From Eutreptiella sp. 'Long Island Sound 2002' (Eukaryota; Protista; Euglenida): DNA of 64,000 bases. Below the pieces are notes generated by a model that searched no databases, was not told the origin of the DNA, and saw only the letters and a program-made list of their open reading frames with translations. Every line of letters starts with the position of its first letter. The first letter of the stretch is position 1. The position numbers and the translations under genes are program-made. Where the stretch lies: the NCBI GenBank assembly GCA_964036045.1, contig OZ038379.1, positions 55,118,001 through 55,182,000 of the forward strand, read 5' to 3'. This document shows, in pieces, positions 9,100 to 34,904 of the stretch.

Positions 9100-10990
9100 G
9101 CTAGTCTTGCTAGAGGGCCAAGTGAAGGTGAAGGACGTCCAAGGTGGTTATTTGAAAAAGAAGTGTGCTCGGATGGATGCACAATCGAAGGAGCGCGAGG
9201 AACTAGTAACCTCAAAAAGAAATGAGGTTCCATTGTAGAGCGGAATTTGCGGCAGCACGAGGAGCAATTCCGGGGGGAGTGCCATTCGTGGCCAGCGGGG
9301 CAACAAGCGGTGGCCGCGGTTGGAGGATTCAGGCATGCGCTTTAGCCTACGGTGGCTGCCTTCCATGGCAAAGCATGAAAATTTGCAGACGATTCTCCAC
9401 TTGCGGGCAAAGAAATACAAGTAGTTAATCCACAAATGTGACCACAGCACCTTTGGCCACTGCAACACTCAGTGGGCCTTGCCCATTCTTATACTACATT
9501 CCGGTAGCCTTCCTACCTTCCCCCCGGACAAGCAATCCGTTTGTTGTGCATGCAGGCCAAACTGGGCAAAATTGTCCCGCCACTCCCTACAAAGATCATC
9601 GCATAGTCTGCCTCCCACCCGTGTGTTGTTCATTCCCCCCTCCTCAATGCATATCGTAATGAGTGCCTCTCACCGCCGAGTGCGCATGAATTGCACAGCC
9701 GCTGCACACTCCAACCTAACGTTTCCCTTCCCGTTTGCTTTGTAAGTGTTCAACCTCCCCTCTGTTACCGTCTTCACTTGAATGCGGGGAACATCTAGAA
9801 TGGGCTGCGACAACTTGCGCACGACCACAGCCGCAGACCTGCCCGTTCCTACTACCACTGCGTCTCGCATGCCCGAAATGCCACATATTGTGATAAGCAG
9901 CACCCCGTGGAACCCATAGTTCGGATTATGGCCGTCTGCTGCAATGTGTCGATATATCGCTCCATCTGGGAGCACCACATCCCACTAGCCGTGGATGGTG
10001 TCTTCCAAGCCAAAGTTGGCAACACATTGTCCCCTATTGCATCCGCACACCCAACACACCGAGGCTTGGGATGCCGCGGCTTTCCAATTCTTGCAATTGG
10101 CCATTAAATTTTGTGCCTTGCCATCGGCACACAAAATAAAAAGGTTTTCGCGGTAGGAACCGCCGATATCCTGGAATACAGCCTTACTTGTGTTCCACAA
10201 TTATTCATTGAAGTCCACTTCCATGGGGGCCGCGCACAACGTGGCCCACTCCTCAATACGGCCTAGTAGCCACTAGCTAACAAGTTGGGAGGGGCTGCTG
10301 GTATGCCCAAGTGTGCAATGGAGGTACGCCGCCTCATGGCGTGATGCACCATCCACCGCAATCAGCATCCAATGTAGTCTTGGATCGCCGCGTTGTTGGG
10401 CGTGGCCAACTTCGGCCGGTCAACAACTAAAAAGGTGTTGCAACCGCTTTGGTAACGGGCAAACGGCCCCATAGAGCTCGACACCCTCACCCGTCGCGGC
10501 AATGAAGCCCCCCGAAGCAGGCTGTGCGAGCTGCTGCATTGCGGCCCACACGTCTTCTCATGGTACACCTTCAACCAGATGAGGAGCGAGATACTACGCC
10601 TCGGTCCTCGATAGAAGGACTGACCGGATGCGCCACACTGCCGCGAGGGTATTCTCCCACAAGGATGGTGCCGTAGGGTTTGCACCACGCCCCCCCCCCC
10701 TCCCGGCTACACGCTTCAACATGATCTGGCGTGTGTCCGGCAGGTGTTGCGCCGTGTAGGGTGCATCTAGCTCCCCGGAGACGACGTCTGCTAACGACTG
10801 GAGTCGGCGTGCCTTGTGTTGTCTAGATTTCATATGGGAGGGGAGGGGGTCCTTCGCTTGGCTCCAGTGCCATGGGGCATTAGAACAATATAACGTTGGC
10901 AAGAAACAGGTGGTAGAAGATTGCAAGTCGCGTCATAGTGTGAAGGGTGCAGCCTGTGGTAGTTTGCAGCCGACTCCAAGTGCGACTCAC
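9100..10990 (-). pseudogene. DDE transposase remnant C, Transib/RAG1-like (CMC supergroup)
   Basis: Largely one frame with stops: WMLIAVDG (D about 10352), LFILCADGK (D about 10124), CWVCGC, NYGFHG, WSHLWINYLYF (HxxxxH-like, second His appears as Y), KFSCFAMEGSHRRLKRM (E about 9362). Confidence 0.7.
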
Positions 10991-11299
10991 AACGATCCGG
11001 AAATGCACAACAAAATGCACTGAAAAGTGCGCCAAAATCGCGTGAAAATCGTGATTGTCTGAAACGTTGAGTTCGAGGTCGTGGTGCATGACTCGTGCGA
11101 ATTTCGCGACATAATTCACAAATGTAATGTACAAAGGTGGCAATCTTCGGGACACTATTCCAAATGGAACGCAAAACGGTTACAAGGGCGCTAGGCGGAA
11201 GTTGGCTTCCACTGCTGCCGGCCCCCGATGCCGCCTTGGGCTTGGGAGTCAAAAAATCAGGGGTGCGGGTAGCCTGCACCATGGTCTGTGTGGGGTAAT

Positions 11300-12750: not shown

Positions 12751-13269
12751 ATCGCCGGACTCCAGCCGGACACAATGACGGAACCGGGGGGCATGGGGTG
12801 TACGGATGCAAAGGGGCTGTGTACGTCATGTTGTGTGGCGCGTGGCGCTCCCGGGCTGTCATGGGCTGGGGTTGCACTGCCGGCCTGGACGTCCTTGTGC
12901 TAACGCTGCTGGGGTGGCGAGGGGATGGTGCGTGGCCGGGGGGTGACAACGTGGTGCGTTGGGCTTGGAGCGGCGTGAAATCGGCGTGTGTCCCCCATTT
13001 TCCCCTGTTGGAGGGCCTCCCGCAGTCACTGAAGAACGGGTGGGTGGTTTTGGTGTGCAGAGAGTTTGCGCGGGTGTAGCCCTTTGGGGCGCAGCATGTC
13101 GGCGGGCACGGTTTCCGATGCGTCTTGTGGCATCCATCCCATCGACGGCCATAGCTCGCTGTTCTCTGGTGTGTCCCTGTCTGATTGGCTCACCAGACCT
13201 TTGTGCAGGGGCATCTGCTGGAGGTGGGCGGTGCGTGGCTGGTATGGGCGCGGGGGTACGGGTTGTCCT

Positions 13270-14418
13270 GGCAGTCCGCCTTCACCCCTATTTCAGGATG
13301 CTTAACTTCAGGGAGGGATACAAAGTCCACAGCCACTGATGCAAAGGGAAAAGAGGACATGGGGAAGGCATCGCATGAGTCAGGATGTGGGCCCCTTTGT
13401 GCCTTGGACTGTGCACATACCACAAAGGCGTCCACAACCTCTTTACCCTATCCCAGTCGTAATCGTCGGACAGATTACGGACATTGAAGTGTCGCTTGAA
13501 AAGTTCGACGGTTTTTGGGGGTACCTGGATGTGCAAAGTAGTGCAATGCTTCTACTACCTAACTCAGGATGCCTACAAGAACCAGTGCCCTACCATTTAC
13601 CCTGATATGGGGGTGTCCCCATGGTGGTTTATGTCACCGGTAGGTTCCATATTCAATGTCTTTCTTGATACCCCAGTCCAGCAGGACTTTCAGGTTAGGG
13701 TCATCTGCGTAGTATGGTTCCTTATCCTCATTCAGGATACTACACGATGGGGGCACATTGACCGATGTGACAGATGTGAGCAGGGTGTGGGGAACATGAG
13801 GAGACTCTCTCATCACATGGGCCATACCATGGAGGTCTTGATCCTCATAGAAATCAGGACCCACGGACTCTTCGGCCTCAGAACCAAAGTGAGGATCACT
13901 AGGATCACTACGCAGGTTGTTCAGGGCACCACACATGTCAATCTTATGGTGATCCGGGCAATCCGGACATGGAGGAGGGTCCGCAGTGACTGGCAGTTCA
14001 GCAAAAGGGTGGTTTTAAGTCACCTTGACCTGTATGTCGGAGGGATAAGCGCATAAGCCCATCTCTGGTCATCTAGCTTGTCTGGGGTGGCCGCTTGCGG
14101 GCTGGCACACTCATAAAGAAAGCCGGGATGGTGGTTGGCCGTGCGCTGATCGCTATAACCGCTGCAGTGTCCATGGCACTTGGCGGTATGGGTGCACGGG
14201 GGTCAAGATTCACTCCCTTTGCAAGGTACAGACATTCCATCAACAAGGGCATCATTTTCGGCCTTGTCTTGGGGTTCCCAGTTCTCCCACCCCTGGAGGT
14301 CGGCATCTGAACCACGGGGGCTGGTGTCATCCGCCAGCCCTGCAGGGTAGGCCCGCACACTCGTCCTTTCCGCGACATGATTGTCCTTACCCAGCTTCTA
14401 GCCAACAACAATGTTGTA
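13270..14418 (-). pseudogene. Ty3/Gypsy pol 3' part: end of RNase H plus integrase
   Basis: YNIVVG*KLGKDNHVAERTSVRAYPAGLADD (RNase H tail); ALHYFAHPGTPKTVELFKRHF and VCAQSK (H2C2 zinc domain); FPFASVAVDFVSLP (integrase core start). Confidence 0.85.
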
Positions 14419-14439
14419 TGGGGTGCAGCCAAGGAAGTA

Positions 14440-14745
14440 TGGCCTAGGAACCCCCCCTTCCTAGGGTTTTTCTACTCCTACACGTTACGAGGGCACCCGA
14501 AGACTTTGAACACAAACACCGCGCCTTCAACGCGCCTACTTTGGGGGACATTGGGTCCCGGGTGGGTGATGTCCAATTTTGGGGTGTTTTTGGAAACCCC
14601 GTTTTGGGCAGGAACCCCCCTGGGAACCCCCCTTCCTAGCCAGGAAGGGGGGTTCCTAGGGGGGTTCCTGGGCAGGAAACCCCCTCCTTCCTATACCCTT
14701 CCTGGGCAGGAACCCCCCTTCCTAGACCCTTCCTATGACCCTTCC
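14440..14745. repeat. Element A left subterminal AGGAAGGGGGTTCC repeats (both orientations)
   Basis: Multiple ggaaccccc / ttcct / aggaagggg units; perfect 15-bp-arm palindrome at 14623-14656. Confidence 0.85.
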
Positions 14746-14929
14746 TGTCATGAGGCAATAGCACACAAATCCGTTCGCTGGGGCTTGAATGGCATTGTGC
14801 CACCGCAGTGATGTTGTCACTGGTCCACGTGCCGCTTGCGTCGATTGACAACGGCCGCACTGCGGCCTTGCCGCACCTCGTACAATTGCAAATCGACACT
14901 CAACGCGTCGGTGTGCACCACGTGCCTCA

Positions 14930-16940
14930 TTCCGAGGCGTGTGATGCGGGGTCGCCGAGTACACCAACCGCGCATCGAGTTTTTGAGATACCGCTTGAAC
15001 GGTTGGTTTCTGTATTATGTCCGAACACTGCGAAAAATGTACAAACTCCCAAAGCGACACGCAAAATATGCGCTGTGAACACATGTCCAATGTACCCAAG
15101 GGGTCACACCCCATTGCAATTTACCCCAACACTCCCCTAAACCGTCACTGGCGGACTCCAATTCCTTGAGTTAGGCCCGTGTTAGCCAATCCCTTTTGCG
15201 CCAGAGCGCGTGCATTCGATGCGTTGATAATAATACATGCTTCATCACTAGGAAAAAGTTAACGCCACCAAAGGCCACGTCGGGTAGGTTGTCCCGCACT
15301 ATGGCCACAACTCGGCCATGTAATGCACTGTCTTCAAAAAACATTTTGCCACCTGTCATATCAAATTTTACGGCCTTGGTTGGCCGGGGAGCCAACCGCT
15401 CAGCATGCGGAACGTTTTTCACCTCATCCAAAAGCTTGTTGTACCTGCGGCTCACTGGTGGCTAAGTGGAAATGTGAAGCTGGGGCTCATTTGGGGCTCA
15501 GTTGTGCATTGCGATGTCTTTGTGCTTGTTTGTTGTGCGTTTTGCATGCTAGGTAATGTGCATTTAATGTTTTTAGAAGTTTTAGATACTCACTTGGTCA
15601 AGGTTCAAGGTGGGGCGTACTTTTTTTGGCGACGGCTCAGTTAACTGAGTGCCTGACTGAGCCGTCGAAAAAAAGAAACCCCCCCGGTCAAATCCTCTCG
15701 GCCTAGGGATTGGTGTCCCTTTGGGGACAGTCCAAAACCCCAACCCACCCCCGAAAGCCACAACTTTTCACATTAAACCCCTTGAAAAACACCACTTAGC
15801 CCCAAATGAGCCGTTTTAGCCCCAGCTTAGCCCCAACGTCACATTTTCAAGTGAGCCGCAGGTACAGTGAAGCTCCAAAACCAAAGCTTTCCCTGTGTCC
15901 TTTGCGGCATTGGCAACGTCGGGTGCACCGTTTTCAATCAAATCTTTCAATGTTTCATTGCGTCGCTGAACAATTGCGTTCGCAATACGACACGAGCCAT
16001 GCTCCACGTCACCAACGCGGTTGCATGGTCCAATTGCCCTCAAAAATGAGCCCCGCCTGCATTGGGCCAATATAGAATTGGCACGTGCCAAGGAATGAAT
16101 GCAATGGCAGCCTGCCCAACATTTTCCCTTTTGATAATTGGCCGAAAGCATGGCTTTGCCATCACTTGTCAAGGCACATACACTGGGTATGCGATTCCCC
16201 AAGTGCCAAAGATCCACAGTGGACAAAACATCCAAAACATCGTGATTAAGGTTTGCCTTAGTGTCAATGGCCCGGAGACAGTGCGTGTCATCCGGTCCGT
16301 CAAGCGCCCACCACGTCGCCGAGCGTCGCACGTCGCCTGCAACTGCTACACCCTCTGACCACACGGTCACGTGGATGTCGCACTTGGTGGCCGAGGTCTG
16401 CCACAGTGGTATGGCACCTGCGCAAATGATAATCAAACGCCGGTCTTTACGAGGGATGTTAAAGGTACCGCACGCCCTACTCAACGTCAGTAGGCTTTGC
16501 ACTACTTCAAGGAGTGGACATACAGGGGCAGCTCGGCGCGATACCACCCCCGATGCAACCTCCAGGGCCGTTGCGACATATGGCTGCAGTTTGCTGCGCC
16601 ACTCCATTAATTCCCTTCGTGTACAATTGCGCTCCAATTTTAACATGTTGTGCGTGGAGAGGCTCATTTGGTGTGCCGTTTGCAACACTTGGATCACTTC
16701 CTCGGAGACATGCTGTTCCTCGTCATCGCGCACCTCGTGGTTGTCGGACCCAATCACTATACCGTTACCGGTTGTGCGCACAACGATGTCGTCATCTCCA
16801 AGCACAGAGCCCTCAACGTCGCCAATGTATTTCCGTCTCTGTCGCCGTGCATCAACCTCCAGATCCCAATACGGGGTCACCCGAACGACACTGCCAAGGA
16901 AATTGGCAACGGCCTTTTGCATTACATTTAAAATGGAAGC
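14930..16940 (-). pseudogene. DDE transposase remnant A, Transib/RAG1-like (CMC supergroup), split by a MITE
   Basis: IICAGAIPLW (first D apparently GAT>GGT), ALTSDGKAM, KCWAGCHC, GDVEHG, KFDMTGGKMF, VTPWVHWTCVHSAYF (HxxxxH), RSVRT*YRNQPFKR (expected E is TAA at 15015-15017). Confidence 0.72.
15444..15862. mobile_element. 419-bp MITE with TA duplication inserted in transposase A
   Basis: 13-bp perfect TIR CCTGCGGCTCACT, further imperfect inverted similarity (aaatgtga, ctggggct, ctcatttggg); TA at 15442-43 and 15863-64. Confidence 0.88.
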
Positions 16941-17209
16941 CTGCCAAGAATTGTGAGGGCAAGATGTGCACAGGAAGTGCCACAAGAACCCCACAAGAAC
17001 CCCCTTCCTGCACATGAAACCCCCCCCTCCTGGCCAGGAACTGTCCCAGGAACCCCACAGGAACCCGTCTCCTTGTACAGGAAGCCCCTTCGTGGACCCT
17101 ACCTGGACCCCTTCCTGCACAGGAACCCCCCCCTTCCAGCACAAGAACCCCCTTCCTGTACCCCTTCCTAGACACTTTCTGCACAGGAACCCCCCCCCCC
17201 TTCCTGTAC
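16941..17209 (-). repeat. Internal block of element A subterminal-type repeats, bounded by GT..AG (putative intron)
   Basis: Minus strand CCAG|GTACAG...TTCTTGGCAG|GCT; interior made of caggaacccc / ccttcct units. Confidence 0.6.
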
Positions 17210-17781
17210 CTGGTGTTTCGGTGTACTGCCCCATCGGTTGCCCGGGTCCTCTCAAACACCGCTGTCACTTCGGGGCATTGCAACCACACATGCCATGCAA
17301 CTGCGTCCATGCTTGGAGAGCTTGGGAATCTCGGTGGTAACCCCAAGGGTGAAGCTATGTGAAGCTCCCCGCTCGTGGCACCACCTGGCGCGCCCTGCGC
17401 ACGATGTGACTACTATCCTACGCGACTGTCGCGCACAAAATAAGATAAGGGTTAGATATGCGTTAGGGTTACGCCAAAAAGGACTAGTTTTTGGATATGG
17501 GTTAAGGTGTGTATTTTTTTTGCGCACCGCGTCGCACAACCCTTGGCGCGTTCGCACATCCATGCATGCATGTGTGCAATCTTGGGAGTGGGCTGGTCAC
17601 AACACACGTGTACTGCAACCACCAGGACGCAATCCCCTCGCAGTGTGCCACCAAGGGTTGTCTCTCCACGTCTCATGCCCACACAGGTTGGCAGAATCCG
17701 AGCATCCCTCAACAGCCACCAGGCCAGAGGGACACTCGGGATCGTTGCGCTCTCATCGCCACCGTGCCTTGCCACTCCTCA

Positions 17782-19056
17782 TCACTTGCTGGGGCTTGGG
17801 CCCTCGCCGTACGTCCGGTTGAGGATGCTCAACGCCCGGTCACATTCCGCAGCTTTCTCCTCCAGCAGAGACTCGGCCTTGACCCTGCCTGCCTGCGCCT
17901 CGCGCGCCGCGTCCTCAGCAGCCTCCAACCGGTCTTCCAGGGCAATCAGGCGTGCCTGCATACTTGCAATGGTTGCCTCGTGCTTGGCAACCTGTTCCCG
18001 TGCTTCACGCTCCTTCTTGGTTGCCTGCTGCGTGGCCCGCTCTGCCCGGGTCTTGCCCCCACTTGCCATCGCCTTCTCAACGGCATCAGGCAACACCTCC
18101 TTCAGCGCCGTGCGCACGACCTCCTGCAACCCAGGTGGCAGCTGCGTGATCACTGTCCCCGTGTCCATTGCCATTGGACTTGCCCGCCCCGGACTGCCTG
18201 GTACGCGCCGCTTGGAGGGGGAGTCGGTGATCGGGGGCCTCTGGGCAGGTCGCTTCACGGATCCCCGCGCTGCCCTGTGTGATTGCTCCGACTTGACCTC
18301 GGCCCCAGCTTGCTGCCACAGTGGTTGTGTACGTTCCTCCGTGCCGGGCTCCTTCTTCACGTCTGAGCGTCCACCCAATTGACCCTGTTCTTGCCGCTTG
18401 TGGTACTTCTCCAGCCACTCGTCAACCGCGTCCTGCACCTCAATGGGGACACCGGCATCCAAATCCGTCAGCCTTGCTAGACTCTTCCGCGTCTTGAAGC
18501 TGCTCTGCTCGCTGTACACCAAGAAAGACCATGTGTTGCTGGCCTTGGCATGGCCAACAAGGCACAAGTACTGCACAACCACGTAAGTCTTGCCATGTCT
18601 TGCATGCCCCTGGGGCAGCTCGGCCAGACTGTCCGTACATGCCACTAGCAACCGCAGTTGCAGGGCAGTGGTTGCCTTCCCCTTCCGCACCGTCAGTGTG
18701 CAGTCGCGATACCAGAACGCGCCCCCGTGCCTGGTCATAGGACTGTGCATGTCTGTGATGTTCAGCGTCGATTGCAACACCCATGTCGGAGGGTCTTGAA
18801 GACTTGGTGCTCGCCCATCCACAGTCCGCGCAGCCTCCGATGGTGCCACTGGCAGTGGGGCTGCCCCCTCCTCCTCATCGACGGACTTCAGGACCAGCCG
18901 CGGGTACACGTCAACATCAGCCTGAAGAGAAGTACGGAAGTGCCAGCGACGAAAGGGGGTAGATAAAGGTAAAGGTAAATTGCTCGGGCGATCTCCGAAC
19001 TCCAGCGTATCAGTGATCCCTACCTGTCCCAAGGCGCAGCACCCTACAGCACACAA
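17782..19056 (-). CDS. Uncharacterised 424-codon accessory protein of element A with C-terminal coiled coil
   Basis: Open frame from the ORF track; globular-looking N half, low-complexity linker, heptad-like tail (EAREQVAKHEATIASMQARLIALEDRLEAAED). True start uncertain; possible splice acceptor at 19044. Confidence 0.55.
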   Translation of the reverse strand: MCAVGCCALGQVGITDTLEFGDRPSNLPLPLSTPFRRWHFRTSLQADVDVYPRLVLKSVDEEEGAAPLPVAPSEAARTVDGRAPSLQDPPTWVLQSTLNITDMHSPMTRHGGAFWYRDCTLTVRKGKATTALQLRLLVACTDSLAELPQGHARHGKTYVVVQYLCLVGHAKASNTWSFLVYSEQSSFKTRKSLARLTDLDAGVPIEVQDAVDEWLEKYHKRQEQGQLGGRSDVKKEPGTEERTQPLWQQAGAEVKSEQSHRAARGSVKRPAQRPPITDSPSKRRVPGSPGRASPMAMDTGTVITQLPPGLQEVVRTALKEVLPDAVEKAMASGGKTRAERATQQATKKEREAREQVAKHEATIASMQARLIALEDRLEAAEDAAREAQAGRVKAESLLEEKAAECDRALSILNRTYGEGPSPSK

Positions 19057-22000: not shown

Positions 22001-23200
22001 CCGAAGCCACCTCACCTCAGGATCCGCGTCCCATTCCCCAAGCCGTCTCGCCCGAAACAGTGAAGCTAATTTCGTCCGGCGTGGGGAGGGGGGAGGCCGT
22101 GGCCGCCGCCCAGGTAAGGTCAGGCAGGTTCATAAGAACTCCCCTGCTCCCTTGATACACCTCGAGCTGACTGCGCGCCTCCCCAATGATCTCCTGAACG
22201 GATGATGCAACGTGGTCGGGACGAGGCTTCAGCTCTGGCAAGGGTCGGGGGCATGGCGGCTGTAACTTCATGGTTTCGTGGTCAGACGTGTAACACTGGA
22301 TGCCGCTACGATCTGCCTGTTGAGACGCAAGCCACGCATAAACATGTCTGATTGCAGGTCCTGGTGCCACCGGTCCAGAAGCTCCTTCGAGCCTCCCTGA
22401 CGAAGCGTTGCACCCAGTCTCATACGCTCAGCCGTAGCTTGCCGTGTACAGTGCGTAGGCAGAACCGGATCCGCTAATAGCCAATGGCACCGGATCCACA
22501 CATCAGGGTGTACGTCCTGAGCAGACAGCCAAAACCAAAACAAAGCCAGGAGAGGAGTGAGCTTACTCCTTTGATCTGGAGTGTTGGCCGGGTGTTGGTA
22601 TCTCGTAAACGTTGACAGACGCTGTAATCCTGACACACCCTCGAAGTCACACACCACACACACATGAGAGGAAGGACCGGGCACTGCTGAATGACTAATA
22701 AAAGAAAAGTCGGGGCTGACCAATATATAGTCAATCTCTGTCGCACGGTGCTTACCACACTGCCGAGGTGCGGAAGGGGGAGGGTTCCTGAGTGACATGC
22801 ACATGCCACAACCCACACACTGTGCCCAGTTCAAGCCCTCAAACAGCCCTCCCCTTGCATTGCCACTGCCGCTGACCCTTGGCAAGCAGTACTAACCATG
22901 TATTTGCCATATTGCATTGTGAACCCCTCCAACCAAAGGCCCGGCGATTCAAAGGGGACATAGTGTCAACCTGTTGGCATGCACACCAAAAGGCTTGCTC
23001 CTCTGCCACCTTGGTGTTGCGAACGATCGCCCCGGCGGCCATCAACAAGCTCGGGTCTACGGGTCTGGGCCCGTGTGGTGCCATCTCCATCCGGTACAGC
23101 AAAACGTCACTGCTCTCCTCGGTACCCCCGGGCGAATCCTCCAAAGCGGCCGTTCACCACGACCGGAATGCTCCCAAGCGGCGTAACCAACAAGGCGTGG
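19044..23200 (-). pseudogene. LINE ORF2: AP endonuclease, reverse transcriptase, RNase H, zinc knuckle
   Basis: EIDYILVSP..PSSHVCV (APE C-terminus); DESGASDTP, GSSQG, VFSDD (RT); TTDAG, TALEW, TADT (RNase H D/E/D); CCFCALSEGNQWAHVQYC. ORFs 21138-21644, 20490-21125 and 19044-20438 share one frame separated by single stops. Confidence 0.85.
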
Positions 23201-24955
23201 TGTTCCGATCTCGGCCAGGGCAGCCACTCGCTCTCGTGTGCATGCCCCGCCAGTGGGCAGTCCTCCGGCTTGGGGGTTTTGTCAGCGGGAATCACATGTG
23301 GTGCGAGCGCTGCCTCGTAATGCCCGGTGTAAAGCGTCGTCCCATCCGATGGAATCAAACAGGTCACCATGTGCTGCAGGGTAGGGACACGACTCGGATC
23401 AGCGGCCTCGGCACTCCCCGGATCGGATGCTGTGCTGCTACTGCTTGTCGCACTTGCTGCACTCGATCCCCGTGTGATTGCGGCAAAAGACTTGGACACC
23501 ACACCCAATGCACTTCTCACTTGTCGGCTTCTGGCGGCATCCGTGGACTCCACAACTGACAGCGGCCTTGTGCGCCCAGAACGGAGGCGTGATGGCGTGG
23601 GTGGTGGCGTAGGACACGGTGTGCGTCGACAGCCCACAGAACCCAATAATACGGCGGGACCCCGGTTCCGCAGCCAATGGTAGGCCGCCTCCTTCATGCA
23701 CCACCGTCGAGCAGATCACCCACAGGGAACCCCTTCTCATTGGCATGCGGTGGATGATCCAAGGCCGAGGGAAGGCACAGGGAGACATGGCGACGAACTG
23801 TGCGCAAACCTCATCATCATGGGATATCCATCGACATTGCCCGGAACACGGAGAGGGCGATGCCATTCATAGGAAGTGACGCTGCTAGGAAATTTCGGTG
23901 CGGCAGTTGGCAAACGTGGGTGATGGACTCGATGTACCCTTGCGTCATTACGTGCAGCGTCTTGCCCAAGATCGCCTCCAACTTGGCCTTCACCCGCGTC
24001 ACGGCCGACAGGTGCGGCAGGTCCCAGAGCTTGATGTTCCCCTCCCCATCCGGATACTTGGACATGTCCTCCAGCTTCCCCCACACCATCTTGCGGTCCG
24101 GCGGGTCCTTAGCTCGGCCAGCAACTAGGCGGTTGTGGTTGAGGATCCGGGCCCAACGCTCCTCGGCGATCGCCACTGCCTCCTTCTACGCCTCCTCCAC
24201 CTCATACTCCGCAAAAAAACTCCGGATGAACAAGTGGTGCAGGCTGGCAAGCTGACTGGGGTCGCTGTTCACGGCAGTGGGGCAGCCACTCGGCAGCTCC
24301 AATAGGGGTTCCTCGTGCGCGACAAACAGCGGCGTGGAGGTGACGGGGAGGGCAAGTAGCCCGCTGGCCGTATACGCACTCGGCACGGTGAGCCCGGGGC
24401 CGTCGCCGTCCCATTCCCACGCTGAGCGACTGGAGAGCGAGTAGATGGGAAGGGTCTCCTCAACGGACTGCCGCGGATCGAAGAGAAACAGCTTCCGCTT
24501 GCTGCCTCCTTGTGCCACCCCTCCTTGGCGAAAGTGGTCGGCTTGGGCTTCGTGGAAGTGAAGCGGAGGGTGGTGGGCGGCTCGGCATCGACAAGATGGG
24601 CAGCCATGTAGTGGCTGTGGATCCGGGTGTGGTCGCTGGGCAGGCGGGCGGACAGGGACTCCAGCAAGGAGGAGTAGTCCGCTCCGCTGGGCCGCACGTG
24701 GAATGTGGTAATCTCGGGGTTGCGGCGCACCGTCTCTGCAATGAGGTCTAAGAGGGCACATGGGTCCCTGTCGCGGAGGATGGACTTGGTGATGCGCACC
24801 CGGCCGATGTTCGTGCCCGGCGGCCAAGTCACGGCGGAGTTGGTTGCGATGGTCGTGTCGTGGAACGTCTGCCCCTCCGGAAGGGAGCAACCACGTCTAC
24901 CGGCCGGGCCTGTGGCGGCCGCCATCCAATCCGAAGCATAGGGACAGGCAGACAT
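23200..24955 (-). pseudogene. Probable LINE ORF1 region, fragmented
   Basis: Protein-like fragments 24269-24955, 23817-24176 and Cys/His cluster KCIGCGVQVFCRNHTGIECSKC, positioned 5' of the endonuclease. Confidence 0.5.
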
Positions 24956-24989
24956 TGCGAAAACCGGGCTGCCTTTGAGGGGCAGGAAG

Positions 24990-25140
24990 GGCCATAGGAA
25001 AGGGGGTTCCTAGCCAGGAAGGGGGGGGTTCCTGGCTAGGAAGGGGTCTAGGAAGGGTCTAGGAAGGGGGTTCCTACTAGGATGGGGTCCAGGAAGGGTG
25101 CAGGAAGGCTCTAGGAAGGGGTTCCTAGGGGGGTTCTTGC
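24990..25140. repeat. Element A right subterminal AGGAAGGGGGTTCC repeats
   Basis: Tandem aggaagggg(tcta/ttcct) units just inside the right TIR. Confidence 0.85.
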
Positions 25141-25307
25141 CCGAAAAAAGTTGACTCCCTTGGTCCGACACCGGGGTCGTGATAGTTCCTAAACACTTAT
25201 TTTGACCCCCAAAACACCCCCCATAAGTGTGGTCCGTTTCTTTAGCGGTGCACTACCATGTCATTTGGCGAGGGGTTCCTAGGCCACCCTTCCTTGGCTG
25301 GACCCCA

Positions 25308-25985
25308 TACCGGGAAAGGAAGTCATTGCAACAGCTGCAACGACCTAGGTGTCGAGCCATAGTACAGACATTCTCCTTGTACCATGACTCGGTGGACTTG
25401 TAGTCTGTCAAAACAGTGACTTTACGCCCTCATGTCCAACTGTTGAACTTGAAGAGGCAAGACACCAGTGCGTAGGTCTCGTTTTACCCCACAGACAATG
25501 TCCTTTGCCCGGTAAACCCCAAGGCTTTGCCCTGGGGACCATATCGGATCTGGACTTCAGGTTTTGTTGATTATGAGGCTCAAGCAGCCCAGCTACCATC
25601 ACGCAAGAGCTGCTCCAACACACCCCCTATGCCAAAATCCGAGGCACCAACGTGAATCGCATATTGACCAGTGTCATTGGGGATATACAATGCACACTTC
25701 TCACACAGTGCCTCCTTGATTTTGGCGAAAATCTGCTCCATGATCTCAGTCCATTCAATGGAGCTGCGGTCGGTGCAGACCTTGCACTTGCCTCCCTCAG
25801 GCGCTCTCTCATACTTCCCTCTGAGGCTGGCCATCAGGGCTGCAGCCAGAAGAGCATACTGAGGTATGTAAATGGAATACCAATGAAATACTTCCAAAAA
25901 TCCCTTCATCTCCTTGGGGGTACGAGTCATGGCTTTAGCCCAGGCACGAACTGCAACTACTTTCTCGCGGGCAGAAGATCTTGGA
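25308..25985 (-). pseudogene. Ty3/Gypsy pol 5' part: RT connection and RNase H
   Basis: EKVVAV..PKEMKGFL..WYSIYIPQYA..IEWT..FAKIKEAL..YAIHVGASDFGIGGVLEQ..ETYALVSCLFKF..KVTVLTDYKS..DFLSRY, with in-frame stops. Confidence 0.9.
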
Positions 25986-28451
25986 GACCCTCGTAAAGCA
26001 GTACAAGGTGAAGGTGATTCTCCAGCCGGGGAAGCAGCCGGAAGTGGACCGAGAGGAGGGCATGCATTCGCCCCGGTCATGCTCTCCCCGCTCCTAGTCA
26101 AGGTGAGCGGGGTCATGGAGGTGCCGATTTGCAATGAAACCAATCTAGATGATGCACAATCGCCTTGGAGCATTGTGCAATAGCATTAGCACGCGATGGG
26201 TGGCCTGAAGCACCGCTTTTGAGGGTAAATGGCCATAATCAGCCCCCAAGAGCAGCTTTTTTGGCACCTTTCTTTAGTGTGTTTGATGCTATAGATTGCC
26301 TAGGCACCCTTGCGGTGATTTATACAGATGAATGGGAACCTGTGCGAGGCATTACCCCACACCCAACACCATTCAATCCCCTATTGGCACCAACACAGTG
26401 CGTGCCCGTGCCAGGGTAGGGTTAGCAAGGGTCACTTGTGGGTCCAAAAGAGGAGCAAAAAGAGTTTTCTCAAAGATGTTCTAGGACCACTTGGTGTGCC
26501 CAAACAAATTGATTCACGTTGTTTTCATTGATTCCTAGCCATGACAGCTAGCCCATGCAAGTCCCCCAAAAGCCGTAAAAGGGCCAAAAACGGCCACATT
26601 TTGGGTACGGGTGGGACAAGGGGGAGGCGTGTCTCTCCAGCAAGTGCACTGAGCAACGAAGGATTTTGGGAGGCGGGGGAGTATTGGGGACTATGGGGCA
26701 GGGGCTCTCAAGCGAGCCAAGCGAGCAAGCGGTGTGTTGGGGGGTATCATTGCCGCACTATGTAGGAGCTAGGCTCCTTTACATGTGTCCTTCAAGAGGT
26801 CTTTATCCGTCTTGGTTGGCTAGGGGTCACCTGCAAGTCAAAAAGTGGTCTAAAGTTATTTTTTCCGAATGTCCTCCAAGATCGCCCCAAGAAGTTGCTT
26901 TAGGTTGTCGTTTTTCACCGATATTAGCCCATGTATGTTCCCCTACCCTTGGTACACGCTAGAAGACCCAATCTCGTTCTAACCTACACGGCGGGAGAGG
27001 GCTAGAACGGAAAAAAGAGTTGGGTACCCGGGGGGGGGGGGGGGGTTTGAGGCTTGTAACCCAGACCCCCCTACCCGTCCTCGGGGGCCCATGGTTTTTT
27101 TTCACAATGTCACCGTTTTCACCTAATCTTGGAGTCTCAAAAATTTTCGTTCTAGCAACGTTCCAGCGACGTTCTAGCAAGCGCCGCTAGAGCGTCGCTA
27201 GAACAATGTATATGAGTGCTCCGCCACTCCTCAAAGAGAAGCTGCCCCGGCTACAATGGCCAGCCGTGGCCCATCGCAGGGTCGGAATGCTCAACCCGAC
27301 TCACGGAGTGCCATGTTCCCCCGGCCCAGCCCCCGGTTAGCCCTATTAGCCCCCCAGCCCCCCCAATAGGTTAGTTGGAAGGTCACTTGGCGGACGCGCC
27401 GGGTCACTTGGTGGTGGGTTGGCCCGATTAGCTCGATTAGCCTGATTAGCCGGCCCCCCTTTCGCGAGTCGCGACACGCTCGTTACCTCTCCTACATGGT
27501 GGGGGGTTGCCGGGGCGCATCCTTGCTCCCGGCACCCCCCTTCTCACCCCCCATGTCCCCTTCCTTCTCCCCCCCTCTTGTCACCCCCCATCTCACCCCC
27601 CTTGTCAGCCCCCTCCCCCTTGTCGTCACCCTCGTCCCCCTCGTCATCCCCGTCATCCGCGTCGTCCCCATCGTCTCCCACAAGGCCTCCCAGAGCTGGG
27701 CCTCCGCCTCCTCCCGGATGCGGAACAGGAGCTCCCCCGGCACCCGGAAGGGGCCCCCCTCTTTCTCTTGCTTCCTTTTCTTCCCCTTCTCCCCGCCCTC
27801 CCCATTGGACCCCTGCGACAGCACCAACCAGTCCCCTAGGTCCAACTCCTCATCCCAATCCCCCAAAACCGTCACTTGGACACTGACGGTCCCCCCATTG
27901 CCCCCCTTCGCTCAAGGGACATACCGGGTGTCCCCCACACCCGGCACATTACCATAGGGGTCCCGGCCCCCATTCTCCAAGGGGGGGCTTGGTGTTTGGT
28001 GGAGGGCTTGCCCTTGCCCTTGCCCTTGGCTTGGGCAAGGCCTTAGGCTTGGTCTGGGCTTCGGGGGGGAGGGGCTCTTCCTCGCTACTCTCGAAGTGGC
28101 AGGGCTTCTTCTTGGGGCCCTTGGGGGGCGTTTGGGTTTGGGGGTTTTGGCGGGGGGTGTCCTCTCACCGCTAGTGCCGCTGGTGTTGTTGTTGCTGCTG
28201 CTGCCGCTGCGGGTCTCTCCTCCCCCCTCCCCCACCCTCAACCAACCCTTGCGCTGCGGGTCCATGCCCCCCGTACTCCTTCCCGCCTCCCACCTACCCA
28301 GCCCGTACAACACCGAGAGGGCCAAGTTGGGGTCCTTCCCCATCATCCAGCCCAACCCGGTGTCCCCCACGAGGTGCGTCCGGCCTGCGGCATCGCGCCA
28401 CTCTACGTGCACCGCGCGGGCGTTGGCTCCACACGTCTGCATGCTCATAAC

Positions 28452-28606
28452 CTGAGAAGAGAAACAAGAGGCAAGGGTGTTCTAGCGGCGTTCTAGGCAA
28501 CTGCTCAAGCGGCGTTCTAGCGACCTTCTAGTGGCGGCGGCGGCGGCGGTTGCTAGATCAACGCTAGAATGGTTCCTAGATCAACGCTAGGACGCAGTCA
28601 ACATAC
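28452..28606 (-). other. Predicted GT-AG intron filled with TTCTAGCG repeats
   Basis: ACG|GTATGT...TTGTTTCTCTTCTCAG|GTT; splicing joins ORF 28598-28915 to ORF 27912-28448 in frame. Confidence 0.75.
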
Positions 28607-29921
28607 CGTGCCTTGCCGGTCAAGGGCGCGGGAGATGGCCCCTAGGTGCCTTGGTGAAGGCGTCCCGGGGGTTGGGGGGCTGCGGCTGCGGGGGTCCCCC
28701 AATTGCGGGGGTTGCGGGGACCTTGGGCTTGGGCTTGGGGCGGGAGGCGATGCCGTGCACCAATCCGGCATACGCCCCCCGGTTGGCCGGCGATGGGTCA
28801 AACCCCCCCATATCCATGATCGCCGACCACGTTGGCGTCTAGGTGCACATCCTTCCCGCAAGCTCCAACCCCCCCCAAACCATGCGCCTGCTACAAGATG
28901 GCGATGAATCGCCACTGGCTCGCCCCCCCCCCTTTCTCACCTCGGGGACGGAGGTGGCGTTGGGCCAAGTCAAACATCTTCACCCCCTTTTCCGAGGGGG
29001 GGCTCGCGTCCCTCCACTTCCGCCCAGGCAACTTTGGTTGCCACCACCACTCCCCTGGGACCCCCCCCACCCGCAGGGGCTTGTCCCGGTGGACGACCCC
29101 CTCCGAGTACACCCATACCCACCTGGCCTGTCCCAAAATCCTTTAATGCACCCGCTACCTCAAAAAACGGAGAGTCCAAACTGGACTCTCCGGGGGGACG
29201 AGGAGGGGGTGGTCGAGGTTTCGATGGTGGGGGCCAGCCAGGACGGCCGGGTCCCATGGCAGGTGCTGGATGGCCCCCCCCTCCTTCGTCCCCCAAAAAA
29301 CCCTCAACCATTGCCCTGCCCCCACCGCCTTCTCCTCCACCACCTTCTCCTCCACCTCGTCCTTTACCGTCTCCTCCACTATCTCCCCCACCTCCGCCTC
29401 CACCACCTCATCCTCCAGCTGCTCCTTCACCTTTGTCTCCGCCGCCACGATCCCCTCATTCCGCGTGACGCTCCTCTACACATGGAGGATGTTCTCCTCC
29501 CTCTCCTTCACCTTCTCCCTCGCCTTCCCGAGGCAGACGACGGCCCAAGCCTCCTGCTCCACATCCCCCTCGGCGCGCAACGCGTCCACCTTGGCCTCCT
29601 AGGCCACCACCTTCTCTTGGCCTTCGCCCCCTTCTGCGCCGTGAGGGAAGAGGAGAGACTTCGCAGCTCCCCCGGCAGCTCCTCCAGCTGCTTGTCCCCT
29701 TCCTCCGTGGCCGCCCTGGCCGACTTCTTGGCGGCCAACGGGTGAGGGGGTGGCAACGGTGGATGTTGGGCTTGGGGTTGGGGCTTGGGCTTGGGCTTGG
29801 GCTTGGCGAGGGGCGGTGTCTTGGGCTTGGCCTCGACTTCGGCCTTGGTCTTGGCCTCGGCCTCGGCCTTGGCGTTGGCCTCGGCCTGCTAGCGCATCAC
29901 CTCGGCCAGCAAGTCCGCGGT

Positions 29922-30077
29922 CTGACGTTGCTAATACAAAAATCGCAGCAGCGTTCTAGCGGCGTTCTGGGCAACTGTTCTAGCGGCGTTCTAGCGACGT
30001 TCTAGCGACCCATCGTGCCGCCTAGATCAACACTAGAACGCTTCCCTAGATCATCGCTAGAACGGACGACAAAATAC
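29922..30077 (-). other. Predicted GT-AG intron filled with TTCTAGCG repeats
   Basis: CAG|GTATTT...CAACGTCAG|ACC; splicing puts the ATG-30119 exon in frame with ORF 29508-29756. Confidence 0.7.
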
Positions 30078-30199
30078 CTGTTTCCAAATCTCCTCGATCG
30101 AATTTTGCGGGGCGGACATGTTGCTGATGCCGAAGAGTCCGTTCGACGGAAGCCTGCATGTGCCCCTGGCTCCTCCTCACCTCCATGGCACCCCTGCCC

Positions 30200-32170
30200 A
30201 AGCATGGCACTTGCGACCAGGGCCCCCCGTGCACAACCCACAACACGTCGACGTTTGCAAACAACCATGTCATACATTGTGCTTGCACACCGGCCTCCCT
30301 GTTGATGGCCGACCACTTACGACCTTCAACCTCGTTCTCCCCCTCCACCTTACAGCCCTCCCCCCCACGATTGCTATGCTCGTTAGGACCATGTTTCAGA
30401 AAGCGGTTGATGCTTTCTGAAATGTCACCCGAGAACATGGCCAAACCAAATGGCCAAATGTTGTGCAACATGGCATCTACATCCTGTTCCAGGCTCTGTA
30501 GATACCATGATGCTGTACCAACAGTAGGGTGCCGCCGGGAATCCCTTGCCACGGCGGCACAGTTCAATGGGTTAGGGGCTTGATATGTACAATAGAGGGC
30601 GTGCAGCAGGTCCCACATGTTCGCGATGGCCTTGTACGTAGCCGTGCTTTGCCTAATGCCGAGGCACCCGGCAATATCCAGCCATGCCTCAAAAAAATTG
30701 GCCGTTTCTTCCCCGTCCGGGGAAGCTGACCCGTAAACTTTGCAACCTACACGCCTCTCCGATAGGAGAACTTGCAGGTCTTGATGGAGCCAAGGGGTGA
30801 CCGCCCTAGCCTCCCGGTCGACAAACTCTCCCAACAAGAGGCCCATGGCCATTGTCAAGTGCAAAATGCACAGGACGACCCAGACACGTGGTAATTGCAA
30901 AATCCGCTGCGTACTACAGCCAGCGGCTTGCAAAGAAGGCGTCCCAAGGAGCAAGGCCGTGTAGTGGGCCTCCTCACCCTCCATGGTCCGCGGGATAGCA
31001 GTACCCTCCCAAGTCTCCTTTTGGGCATTCCATATCCCCTCATTGACCATGGAGCCCACTTGGGGGCTTGTGGACACTCCGATCACCCTTCGTGTCCACA
31101 GTTGATCCCCCCGAGGATCACCTTTGCCTCCACCTTGGAGGCCCCCCATTGGACGAGCCCCGTGTCGATGACTCTTGAAGCAGCTAAACACAAGACATGG
31201 GGGTTAGTTCATTGGGTTCTAGTCTAGTCTAGCCTAGCTTCTAGTGAGCGGTGTCCGAGGCTAAGTACATCAAAACTAGAACGAGTGACGGGCACTAGGT
31301 GAGAGGAGTACCTCCCAATTGCTCTTCCACAACGTCCCAAGGGTGTCCATGGCCTTGTTATCGCAATTGGCCACGCTCAACACCCAAAGGCCCGTGGGGG
31401 AGCGGGCCAAGCGGTCGAAGTTGGCCAAGGAGATGAGTTGGGTCCAATTTCCCCTGGCCACGGGGTAGGCATCCCCCCGGACGATGAACGTCACTGGGAA
31501 GTTGCAACTGATTGACGGCACCAAGCCTGGCCAGGAGAGGATATATTTGACCCATGAGGCGAAGGGCCATGAGATCCCGGTGGCCTTGGGCAACACCGTG
31601 GCAATGGGGGGATCCAATTCCATGGGGGCGAACAACTCCTTCCAACGGGCTTGGAAGTCCCGCTTAGTGCAAATTGGATGGGAGTAGGGGGCACCGGGGA
31701 CGGTGCGGTGGTACTCATAGTTATAGAGCATGTAGAGCTCCGAGAGGGTCCTTCACGAGGACTTGGGTGCCTTCATGTTGAGCACAAGTTCACACATGGC
31801 GGTAGGGGGGGGAAGGGAGGCGGCGTATGCCTCAACGGCGGCCTTGCATGCCTCACCCGTGGTTTGGGTAGAAGTGGCGTTGTTCACATAGTGGATGGCG
31901 TTGTTGAATTGCCGCCGTGCTCGGGGGCATGATAGCGCCCACGTGGCTAGGTAATGGCCCACCCGCTCATCCTTGAGGTTCAAAGCCCCACTCAAGTTCC
32001 GTAGTGCCTTAGACAAGAGGGAAGTATCCTTCCCGGTTTCGGAGGGAGCAAGGGGGAAAGGGGTGTTTCATGGCAAAGAAATGTGTAATATCTAAGTGTG
32101 AGGGAAGGGACCATGGCACAATGCACCATGGGCAATAGCAAGCATGCACGGCGGAACCATGAAGGACCTG
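30200..32170 (-). pseudogene. DDE transposase remnant B, Transib/RAG1-like (CMC supergroup)
   Basis: TFIVRGDAYP (D about 31472), ILGGDQ (D about 31106, frameshifted), VVLCILHLTMAMG, SWYLQSLEQDV (position of HxxxxH, His codons not retained), FGLAMFSGDISESINRFLKH (E about 30416). No clear CxxC. Confidence 0.72.
31184..31311 (-). other. Predicted GT-AG intron in transposase B containing CTAG repeats
   Basis: GAG|GTACTC...TCTTGTGTTTAG|CTG; interior ctagaagctaggctagactagactag; the downstream exon needs a 1-nt indel to stay in frame. Confidence 0.55.
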
Positions 32171-34904
32171 GCACATCTTGGTAGACATTATATCGTTCTA
32201 GTATGGATCTAATCTAGGCTAGAACATCTAGTCTAGATGTTTTAGGCTAGAACAAGATTGTGTCTTCTAGCGTGTACCAAGGGTAGCACCTTCAAAAGGC
32301 CCCCAAATGGCTAAAATGAGTGTTGAAAGTGATCTTGCATAAGTGCCACCGTCATTTGCTATTTTTGATTGCGATGTACTGCTTTAGGCACACTTACGAT
32401 GATTAACCATTATGAATGGGAATGTTTGCAAGCTATTCTTATAACACCAAAACCTACCGTGCACCACGCACAAGTTAGGGTGCTTGGAGTGCTCAAACAT
32501 GTATTTCACAGTTGTTTTGACCTGCAATTTCCCAAAAAGCCATGTCGGAATCCAAAATGGGGCAAAAAGGGTTCAAAAATGCATGCCCTTTTTGGGCATA
32601 ATTCGTGGTCTATCCGATATTCCCTCACCCACCAGCTTGGTCCTGATAGGTCAGTCTTGATTCGGTGTGGGGTCCCCGAGCTGGTGGAACAAGTAAGATT
32701 TCATTACCCACTTTAGGGTCTCGGGTGCAGCTTCCCGTTTTAGCCAGCAAGCAAGCAAGTGCGCAACCAGCATGCACGAAATTGGCAAAATTTAGAAAAC
32801 CATCGCGGCGGTTGGGATCCGGCCAAAGTTTTGGTGGTTGATGCCTATGAGTATGAGGTGAAGTACAATCGCACAAAGCGAGGTGGGCGGCTTGTTCGAA
32901 TTCCATACCCCCCCCCCCCCCGGGCTCTCCCCCCCTCCCCCTCGAGACCCCCCCAATTTTTCCAACCTGTCTTTCTGCAATTTGAGGTTTTGGGGCAAGG
33001 ATAGGCGCCAAAGGAGCCAAATTTTCTTTGCCCTTACTGAGGGGTTTTTCCCCCCATGTGTCTATACTCAAAATACTCTAAATTTTCTAGAGAAGTGAAA
33101 AATGTTTGAAAAATCAAAAACAATTGAACCCTGACCTGACCTCCAGGTCGGACCTTGGCTGATGGGAGCCTGGGCTAATGGGCAAATGTTTTCTGAAATT
33201 TTTTTGGCCCCATTTTTGTATGTTCAAAATGATCAACGCGTCACGGGGATCATTTTGAGGTATGTATGTTGGTGATCCGCTGACCCCCCCCTCTAGGGGG
33301 AGTCCGCCGGCTAACCGCGTAACCCACCTACTCCCCCCTCACCCCCCCCCCCGCCCCCTCCAGACCCGCAAATTTTTTGCACCCCGTTGGGGTCTCGAAT
33401 TTGAAACCCCCCCCCCCCCCTTGACACAAATTTCGAGCAAGAAACTCAACGGCAGCTGGAAACCACCGTTGTGGGTGACAAACCAAATTTCAAAATATGT
33501 CAGAAATGGCCAAACAAAAACATTTTTGCGGGGGAAATTCGGGTGCCTAGGATGTAGGTGGAGAGGGGCATTAGCATTTGGAACTGGCCGAAATGATGAA
33601 CAAACACCTTGGGGCATTGTGTCGTAGCAGTTGCCCGCAATTAGTGTAGATGCCTCTTGGGGGTAATAAGCTTGCAAATTGAGCCTCGAAAAGTGGATTT
33701 TTGCATAGCTTTTGGAGCTTGACCTTCCTTCGTTGCGTTTGGCTGCCATGTACTGCCTTGGACACTTTTGTGGTGATACACAATGATGAATGGGAACATT
33801 TGCAAGCTATTTCCACACCTCAAACACCCTTTCGAGGACCATTGGCACCGAGGAGTGGTGCATAACACGCACATGCAAGGGTAGGGTTCGCTGGGGCTCA
33901 CCTATGGATCAAAAAGGTATCCAAAATGATTTTGCCAACTTGTCCCGAGACCATTTGGGGTGCTGCTACAATTGGTTTTTAAGCCGTTTGGAGCTTTTTT
34001 TTTTAAACCCATATTAGCCCGTGCAACGTCCCAATACGCTTTTAAAAGGGCCCAAATGGGCCAAAATCAGCTTTGAACGTGATCCTGGAGAAGTGCCATC
34101 TTCCTTTGCTGCATATATTGTGTTGGGCACCTTGATGGTGATGAATACTGTTGAATGGGAATGTTTGCCAGCACCAACACCCTTCAATGCCCCATTGACA
34201 CCCATGAGTGGTGCGCTGCATACTTTCTAGGGTAGTGCTAGTGGAGTCGTGTGTGGGTCCAAAAATGGTTTAAGATGATGTTTTCCAAAGTTGTTTTTGC
34301 ACCAGGAGGGGTGCTGAAACTATTGGTTCAAGGCTATTTTGAGCCATGTGCAATCCATGTTACCCTATGCAAATTCCAAAAAAAAAAAAGCCTTGAACAT
34401 GACCATATTGGGACCAAAGAGGGACCAAAATAGGGACAGAAACGCATTTTTTCAAGTGCTCCAATAATTGGTGTTAAACCATTTTTAGCTATCTTTGAAC
34501 CATGTTTTCCCTTTTTGAGCCCATTTCGCTGGTGTACTTAATGTTCCCTCACCCACCAACTCAGTCCCGGTATTCAATTTTGATTAGGGTCATAGGATAT
34601 GCCGCAGTGGGATCACCCGATACTTGTCCCACCATAGTGGCCATGTTCAATGGCCGCCCTATTTTTCTGTCATTCCCCATGAATCAAATGTGCCATGCTT
34701 TGCTGCTGCTTTCTGCTACTCTCCGTGTCCATCACATTTCTCTCCCTTTGCAGTGCTGTGTTGCTTATTGTTGTATGCTCTTGCATCGTTTGTTTCTGTC
34801 CCATTGTTTCAGCAATTGAAGTGCCATGTGCACTATTATCGACGAATTTGCAAAGCGGTTTTGTCAAAAATTGATACACATGAATCATCTAGTATTCTTG
34901 CTTG

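Follow-up and report, generated by a model that had tools for sequence, protein, structure and literature searches.

The 64-kb window analysed here (64,000 nucleotides of contig OZ038379.1, positions 55,118,001 to 55,182,000, from Eutreptiella sp. 'Long Island Sound 2002') is repeat-rich eukaryotic DNA with a G+C content of about 55%, in which a tRNA scan and an Rfam scan gave no matches. The features of main concern are (i) element B, a complete and probably inactive transposon of a RAG1-fold family at positions 26946-32283, (ii) element A at 14419-25307, which belongs to a second family, is dead, and is interrupted by about 6.4 kb of other sequence, and (iii) a set of motif-like strings at 9151-10419, referred to as remnant C. 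All coding signals considered for A, B, and C lie on the minus strand. At a probability of roughly 80%, A and B are dead representatives of two separate cut-and-paste transposon families with an aspartate-aspartate-glutamate (DDE) transposase, and both families stem from the radiation that comprises RAG1 and the EnSpm-Mirage-Chapaev-Transib (CMCT) clade. Elements A and B apparently represent separate, undescribed lineages of this RAG1/Transib-CACTA radiation.

Element B is bounded by inverted ends of 41-44 nt (pair I3, 26943-26986 and 32243-32286, 93% complementary), and its termini read TA, CCCTTGGTACACGCTAGAAG...CTTCTAGCGTGTACCAAGGG, TA, with the end sequence CCCTTGG..CCAAGGG (CCCTTGGTACACG..). 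The TA target duplication occupies 26944-26945 on the left and 32284-32285 on the right. A second copy, at locus L011 of the same assembly as the window, is 80% identical over 5.5 kb; homology between the two is lost exactly at the ends of B, and the L011 copy likewise has TA on either side. The window copy was inserted in another repeat, a paralogue of which, at about 33985-34060, spans the junction and has a single TA near 34020-34030 in place of TA-element-TA. Two insertions, together with a paralogous empty site, therefore support both the boundaries and the TA duplication of B. The window contains 13 copies of the octamer GCTAGAAC, against 0.9 expected, and 13 of 13 fall inside B, both at the ends and in internal clusters at 28479-28521 and 29953-30063, between coding pieces.

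The transposase gene of B has two exons. The first (31309-31752, minus strand) contains the text ..FIVRGDAYP..., in which RGDAYP supplies the first catalytic aspartate (D1, 31471-31473), and aligns with the D1 exons of loci L001, L003, L004, L008, and L010 and with residues 1-100 of the related protein P0145. The second (30049-31140, minus strand) carries RGDQLW, with the second aspartate (D2) of RGDQ at 31105-31107, C-I-L-H at 30859-30870, and an E-S-x-N-x-x-L-K motif in SESINRFLK, whose glutamate lies at 30415-30417; the D-D-E spacing is 81/231. The motifs that a first-pass annotation of the window, made from the letters alone, had listed for B are all found in the places it gave, on the minus strand, and their key residues prove to be conserved in the family. 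The two-exon structure is common to L001, L003, L004, L008, and L010, where the first exon closes at the identical codon with GT directly next to it. Together with the window (31309), these loci make six lineages, only 30-40% identical, in which the intron between D1 and D2 stands at one codon position. P0145 (434 residues; L005-L007) is spliced or intron-free and runs continuously through both exon parts; the 1.8-kb Logan contigs that encode it were assembled from five runs and are identical.

A word-indexed sequence collection yields 91 homologues of the second exon. Most are copies at 60-85% identity that lie on megabase contigs of a single ENA assembly, and several lineages share no more than 33-45% identity. 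When 1.84 billion representatives are searched with a profile, the family extends to 762 clusters at 50% identity (E ≤ 1e-3). Residues at the catalytic and associated positions are strongly conserved: D1 in 10/10 sequences, D2 in 28/29, the cysteine and histidine of C-I-L-H in 39/41 and 38/41, the glutamate in 35/37, and the asparagine and lysine that follow it in 34/37 each. The B-family alignments lack the zinc motifs C(2)C and H(3-4)H: they show at most one, nonconserved, cysteine after D2 and no histidine pair before the glutamate. Near-invariant A-G-C and C-I-L-H residues stand about 16 positions apart in the family (alignments A1 and A4), and their pattern makes a replacement metal site possible. 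At L008, 493-nt inverted repeats (3609-4101 and 15113-15605) surround a divergent B-like transposase gene of the P0069 lineage and may be the long terminal inverted repeats of that lineage. Several metagenome runs from estuaries contain near-identical words of B, as do runs of two coded organisms; the host or close relatives therefore inhabit estuarine water.

The fold of the B transposase was modelled on P0145, the intron-free relative rather than the window copy, with 53 alignment rows that included trimmed D1 exons. The model has a predicted local distance difference test (pLDDT) score of 91.2 and a predicted template modelling score (pTM) of 0.91. The first-pass annotation had proposed a structure search for a transposase with an RNase H fold, and such a match was obtained. 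In Foldseek against the PDB, all 48 matches at E ≤ 1e-3 are RAG1, amphioxus BbRAG1L, or HzTransib (best E value 8.4e-11; template modelling (TM) scores 0.55-0.64), and the next match is the P element at E 0.02. VIA-align superimposes model residues 1-411 on RAG1 538-1004 with a Z score of 22.4 (380 residues aligned, 3.7 Å), followed by BbRAG1L (19.6), HzTransib (19.5), the P element (14.0), and Hermes (8.5). Among Swiss-Prot models, the top eight matches are the RAG1 proteins of eight vertebrates (E about 1e-10), and the ninth has an E value of 3e-3. A shape search of the ESM Atlas returned RAG1 clusters at TM 0.68-0.74 and unnamed cnidarian and mucoromycote clusters at 0.77-0.82. A model of the second exon by itself is poor (pLDDT 63), and its 18 best VIA-align entries are all RAG1 or HzTransib (Z 7.8-11.2, the next 5.3), with RAG1 residues 790-957 matched at Z up to 11.2. 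The RAG1/Transib-type core that had been proposed for B is borne out by the model, in which the architecture extends from the pre-RNase H region through the C-terminal helices. As modelled, B belongs to a broad, poorly annotated set of eukaryotic proteins with this architecture.

Element A is bounded by 39-nt inverted ends (pair I6, 14416-14454 and 25272-25310, 92% complementary) that agree with those at loci L012, L013, and L014, and its termini read TA, TGGGGTGCAGCCAAGGAAG...CTTCCTTGGCTGGACCCCA, TA. The ends start TGGGGTGCAGCC.. and have the form TGG..CCA (TGGGGTGCAG..CTGCACCCCA). Repeats resembling CCTAGGAACCCC occur eight times in A, against 0.5 expected, near both ends and once internally. 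Inverted ends with TA flanks and subterminal repeats had been proposed for both A and B, and both elements have them; the further claim that both target TA holds for B and fails for A. At L014, where both ends are present, TG stands on either side; this TG is a direct repeat and is therefore a duplication, not part of the inverted end. The single ends at L013 and L012 are followed by TG and CG, respectively. Element A thus makes 2-bp duplications that are not TA-specific, given TA in the window, TG at L014, and TG or CG after the single ends. Fragments of a Gypsy-type pol gene flank A at 25580-26173 and 13193-13447 (both minus strand), with a Pfam RT_RNaseH_2 match and integrase-like text; joining these flanks in silico with a single TA does not restore a clean frame.

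The gene of A is split in the window. Its N-terminal part, about 430 residues in which Pfam finds no match, lies at 23666-24955 (minus strand), where residues 1-431 of P0115 and 1-372 of P0116 map. In these longer relatives it is fused to the catalytic part, and in the window it adjoins the other end of the element. The catalytic part occupies 14725-17201 (minus strand) in several frames, as judged from translations, tblastn with intact relatives, and a family hidden Markov model (HMM) that matches 17264-14725 in five pieces. The deletion derivatives L013 5648-8549 (2.9 kb) and L014 5647-9048 (3.4 kb) carry the N-terminal and catalytic parts fused in one open reading frame. The two parts are separated in the window by a retroelement-like insert at 19044-23666 (minus strand), which is foreign to the family and contains endonuclease-like and reverse-transcriptase-like text. 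Its APE- and reverse-transcriptase-like motifs were recognised by eye only, and Pfam finds no match in it. The whole 6.4 kb between the gene parts, which also includes a 424-codon frame, is absent from L012, L013, and L014.

The motifs proposed for A are present, in a damaged state: CAGAIP, with D1 changed to G (16416-16418); TSDGK, with D2 at 16161-16163; CWAGC; DVEH; HWTCVH (15075-15092); and T*YRN, with the catalytic glutamate changed to a stop codon (15015-15017). With both of these residues lost and the frame broken several times, the window copy of A is dead. For a 482-codon frame at 15819-17264, 28 homologues were found at 61-85% identity, all in the same assembly. The family counts 102 homologues, among them a lineage at 35% identity (P0300, P0365) that a profile search added. 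Intact relatives have the aspartates and the glutamate in place: ..IICADATPLW.. (D1), ..LTGDGKAM.. (D2), CWVGC or CPCC, GD(V/F)xHG, HW(A/V)(C/V)(V/A)H (HWACVH or HWVVAH), and ..(T/C)E(Y/Q)RNQxFKR. The layout D, D, C(2-3)C, D-x2-H, H-x4-H, E-x3-N is thus kept between two lineages at 35% identity, with a spacing of D1-87-D2-236-E that is nearly equal to that of B. It corresponds to the motifs that define the CMCT clade (PMC12730594), as the first-pass annotation had recognised.

Placement of A was also approached through language-model neighbours. An Atlas search with intact P0094 returned unnamed clusters at 0.94, RAG1 fragments and Plavaka at 0.90 each, and Transposase_21 at 0.88; the ten best named neighbours all belong to one clan (10/10). 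The same search with the truncated window copy gave no signal (0.48). One of the 0.94 neighbours has a model similar to Transposase_21 and Plavaka proteins, with a TM score of about 0.7. Motif layout and language-model neighbours together place A, with moderate confidence, in the EnSpm-Mirage-Chapaev-Transib clade, and a fold of that clade's kind may be presumed for it.

Several findings weigh against assigning both families to the RAG1/CMCT radiation. Pfam, even at an E value of 10, gives no match to A-family proteins (RAG1 domains, Transposase_21, DUF4218, and Plavaka PF18759 included) or to the B transposase (RAG1 domains, Transposase_21, and Plavaka included). PDB sequence and profile searches with A found nothing, and the placement of A rests on motif order and on language-model neighbours that are themselves leads. 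For B, the link by sequence alone is marginal: the best match of the family profile among PDB sequences is BbRAG1L (6b40_A) at E 0.05, in an alignment that is informative all the same, as it sets CILH on DATH and vESlNrllK on nEAgNKLFR. Matches of B to designed TIM barrels in the PDB sequence and profile searches were dismissed as spurious. Among AlphaFold DB clusters, many unnamed eukaryotic proteins match the B model at E 1e-14 to 1e-9, with RAG1 at rank 22, and one neighbour labelled as a MULE-domain protein scores like RAG1. A MULE identity, considered because of the ES.N..LK motif, was rejected since the fold ranking places RAG1/Transib far ahead. Since the PDB contains no structure of a CACTA, Mirage, or Plavaka transposase, "closest to RAG1/Transib" is a ranking among solved and named structures only. 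Finally, transposition by these families is a prediction, and the window copies of A and B are damaged. The same silence of Pfam that weakens the placement makes it plausible that both lineages are undescribed, as had been suggested, since neither A nor B matches any Pfam transposase model. In all, Pfam was run on at least 40 open reading frames and pieces from A, B, C, and the accessory regions, and it turned up no transposase family.

The catalytic core of RAG1, the recombinase of antibody genes, is usually traced to animal Transib and RAG-like transposons. The likeness of B to this group covers the whole core architecture (Z 19.5-22.4 over about 380 residues), the C/D-x2-H motif after D2, and the E-x2/3-N-x3-K/R motif at the last catalytic residue. 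Element A has the C..C and H-x4-H motifs, the second histidine of which stands 20 residues before the glutamate, as in RAG1. Transib and RAG-like transposons have 5-bp duplications and CAC-type, heptamer-like ends (PMC9435367; PMC1131882), and a RAG-like transposon in a pelagophyte alga retains the classical 5-bp duplication and CAC ends (PMC9435367). The present elements differ in their 2-bp duplications (TA in B, TA and TG in A) and in their ends, which begin CCCTTGG.. in B and TGGGG.. in A and do not resemble the CAC(A/T)GTG heptamer. Unlike Transib and RAG1, B is without the zinc-binding C2/H2 residues, and neither A nor B matches Pfam RAG1_RNase_H, ZnC2, or ZnH2 at E ≤ 10. Further differences from RAG are the introns of the B gene and the possible presence in B of a second gene that has no relation to RAG2. 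A DDE core of the RNase H fold that contains a helical insertion and the C/D-x2-H motif is also known from the P element/THAP9 and hAT (Hermes) transposases, but their structural match to B is clearly weaker (Z 14.0 and 8.5, respectively, versus 22.4 for RAG1). A full-text literature search linked Euglena and Transib by nothing beyond passing mention.

In the CMCT clade, all members have C(2)C and H(3-4)H between D2 and the glutamate and make duplications of 2-5 bp, and most have 5'-CA..TG-3' ends (PMC12730594). The 2-bp duplications of A and B fall within this range, whereas their ends do not conform (CC..GG in B, TG..CA in A). Both hallmark motifs are found in A (CWVGC/CPCC and HWACVH/HWVVAH) and neither in B. 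The long insertion between D2 and the glutamate of A, bearing C(2)C, D-x2-H, and H(3-4)H, is reminiscent of EnSpm/CACTA, Mirage, and Chapaev, but CACTA-type ends, a 3-bp duplication, and Transposase_21 or DUF4218 matches are lacking in A and B alike. Mirage is listed in Repbase with 2-bp duplications. Besides Transib, the described elements that come closest to the present families are two fungal lineages; A and B depart from all three in ends and motifs. ESTA, described from rust fungi (Kojima 2025), combines TA duplications with an HHpred match to RAG1, has ends of the form CACCAC..GTGGTG (its supplementary sequences begin CACCAC or CACCGC), and often carries a TET/JBP dioxygenase; PlavakaA of mushroom fungi has 2-bp duplications and TGT..ACA ends (PMC12730594). 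The union of TA duplications with a RAG1-like transposase, which the first-pass annotation had counted among possible marks of novelty, therefore has a precedent in ESTA from 2025 (PMC12730594).

It could accordingly be argued that one or both families are divergent members of a described CMCT lineage, B of ESTA and A of PlavakaA or Mirage. Like ESTA, B makes TA duplications and has RAG1 as the only detectable known relative of its transposase (compare PMC12730594); like PlavakaA (PMC12730594), A has 2-bp duplications and TG..CA ends, and Plavaka clusters are among its language-model neighbours. The details diverge. The ends of B are CCCTTGG..CCAAGGG instead of CACCAC..GTGGTG, and all CMCT lineages, ESTA among them, are reported to keep C(2)C and H(3-4)H (PMC12730594), neither of which B has; this separation is made from the published description of ESTA, not by direct sequence comparison. 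No dioxygenase was seen in B or A here, and A is not restricted to TA (TG flanks L014). The ends of A (TGGGGTGCAG..CTGCACCCCA) differ from TGT..ACA, and neither the Plavaka model PF18759 nor Transposase_21 in Pfam matches A. The hosts also differ, rust and mushroom fungi on one side and a probable euglenid on the other. Membership in a described lineage is on this balance unlikely, though a good deal less so than the single family originally proposed, in which A, B, and C were divergent members of one TA-targeting, two-gene family. That proposal drew on a similar motif order, nearly equal D-D-E spacing in A and B, and the presence of 2-bp duplications and subterminal repeats in both. Against it, hhalign, run twice and the second time with the 35%-identical lineage of A, gave a profile-profile probability below 0.1% between A and B, which show no similarity in sequence either, and on segments of the window neither HMM finds the other element. 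The two also differ in their ends, subterminal repeats, zinc motifs, intron structure, and N-terminal regions; A is not TA-specific, and C matches neither family. A single family is thus highly improbable, and the interpretation as two separate families is preferred; the first-pass reading is upheld in part.

Remnant C (9151-10419, minus strand) had been read as a third transposase. The strings quoted for it (AVDG, ADGK, CWVC, and MEGSH) exist, at 10359, 10128, and 9366, but a transposase remnant could not be confirmed, because no piece beats chance against the A and B profiles and Pfam finds no match in any of its pieces. E values against the A and B HMMs, one of which kept the C-terminal columns, range from 0.2 to 16 among 1406 window segments. 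The strings lie in several frames with many stops between them, and tblastx sum statistics were discarded because they are equally "significant" against A and against B, the E values being alike for unrelated subjects. On this side, the strings may be short motifs that happen to fall together in decayed sequence. On the other side, YFFARKWRIVCKFSCFAMEGSHRRLKR of C aligns by eye with YFARRFGSLYIFRSIPTEYRNQPFKR of A, with equal spacing from AR to the glutamate, and ADGKA..L.AN..CWVC resembles GDGKAML.AN..CWVGC of A. Since the MEGSH piece aligns by eye with the glutamate region of A at equal spacing, C may be an old A-like remnant; the odds between chance and descent appear about even.

A second, coiled-coil gene had been proposed for both bounded elements. 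The region downstream of the B transposase (27000-29950, minus strand) could hold a multi-exon accessory gene; it is of low complexity, rich in K, P, and E, and 80% identical to L011 throughout. Its matches to L004 and L008 are few, collinear, and biased in composition (sum E 2e-6 in tblastx; 1e-6 in phmmer, at high bias); two short conserved blocks look alike by eye, and Pfam finds no domain. A conserved accessory gene, with some role in the element, is on these matches possible in the B group, if weakly supported. For A, the candidate is the 424-codon open frame with a coiled-coil-like tail at 17782-19056 (minus strand), which has weak coiled-coil Pfam matches only and is missing from the A derivatives. 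Neither it nor the parts of the retroelement have a paralogue in the fetched loci, and its assignment to element A is unsupported.

These features suggest how the two families would move. The intron-containing B transposase would bind the GCTAGAAC repeats adjoining the 41-nt inverted ends, excise the element, and reinsert it at TA through a 2-bp staggered cut, so that TA is duplicated. Excision may form hairpins, as in RAG1, Transib, and hAT. The B core is predicted to consist of a pre-RNase H region, an RNase H fold with a long helical insertion between D2 and the glutamate, and C-terminal helices, the C2/H2 zinc motifs having been lost. The A transposase is longer and joins the N-terminal sequence of about 430 residues to a D-D-C..C-DxxH-HxxxxH-ExxxN core. 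Family A has ends (TGGGGTGCAGCC..) and a subterminal repeat (CCTAGGAACCCC) that differ from those of B, and it makes 2-bp duplications without fixed sequence.

Elsewhere in the window, a satellite-like array of about 35 tandem units of about 32 nt (..CTGCATGCATGCCTGTGTGGCAGATTATG) occupies 48586-49716. A tandem repeat of 103 nt is present at 1518-1979 and 45868-46132, as related copies 44 kb apart (families D3, D6, and D8).

What is new at this locus is the occurrence of two distinct families side by side, the model of the full B core, the empty-site evidence for TA duplication by B, the non-TA 2-bp duplications of A, and the loss of the zinc motifs from B. A high-confidence RAG1-type core is found in a protist transposon family that standard annotation does not see, as it has no Pfam match. 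A broader proposition, for which the chances are somewhat short of even, is that B, and perhaps A, are unnamed branches of the RAG1/Transib-CACTA radiation at the superfamily level, abundant in a euglenid and widespread in aquatic protists, with B having a RAG1 fold without the C2/H2 zinc site, targeting TA, and bearing ends unrelated to recombination signals. The two families are a non-fungal counterpart to the recently described ESTA and Plavaka lineages, and their profiles would give annotators access to a large block of "unknown repeats" in euglenid-like genomes and metagenomes. The known range of the RAG1 fold is widened by B, a large family with a TA/2-bp signature, non-Transib ends, and no zinc site. 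If the broader proposition is true, the RAG1 core architecture would be older than animals and separable from the 5-bp/CAC signature.

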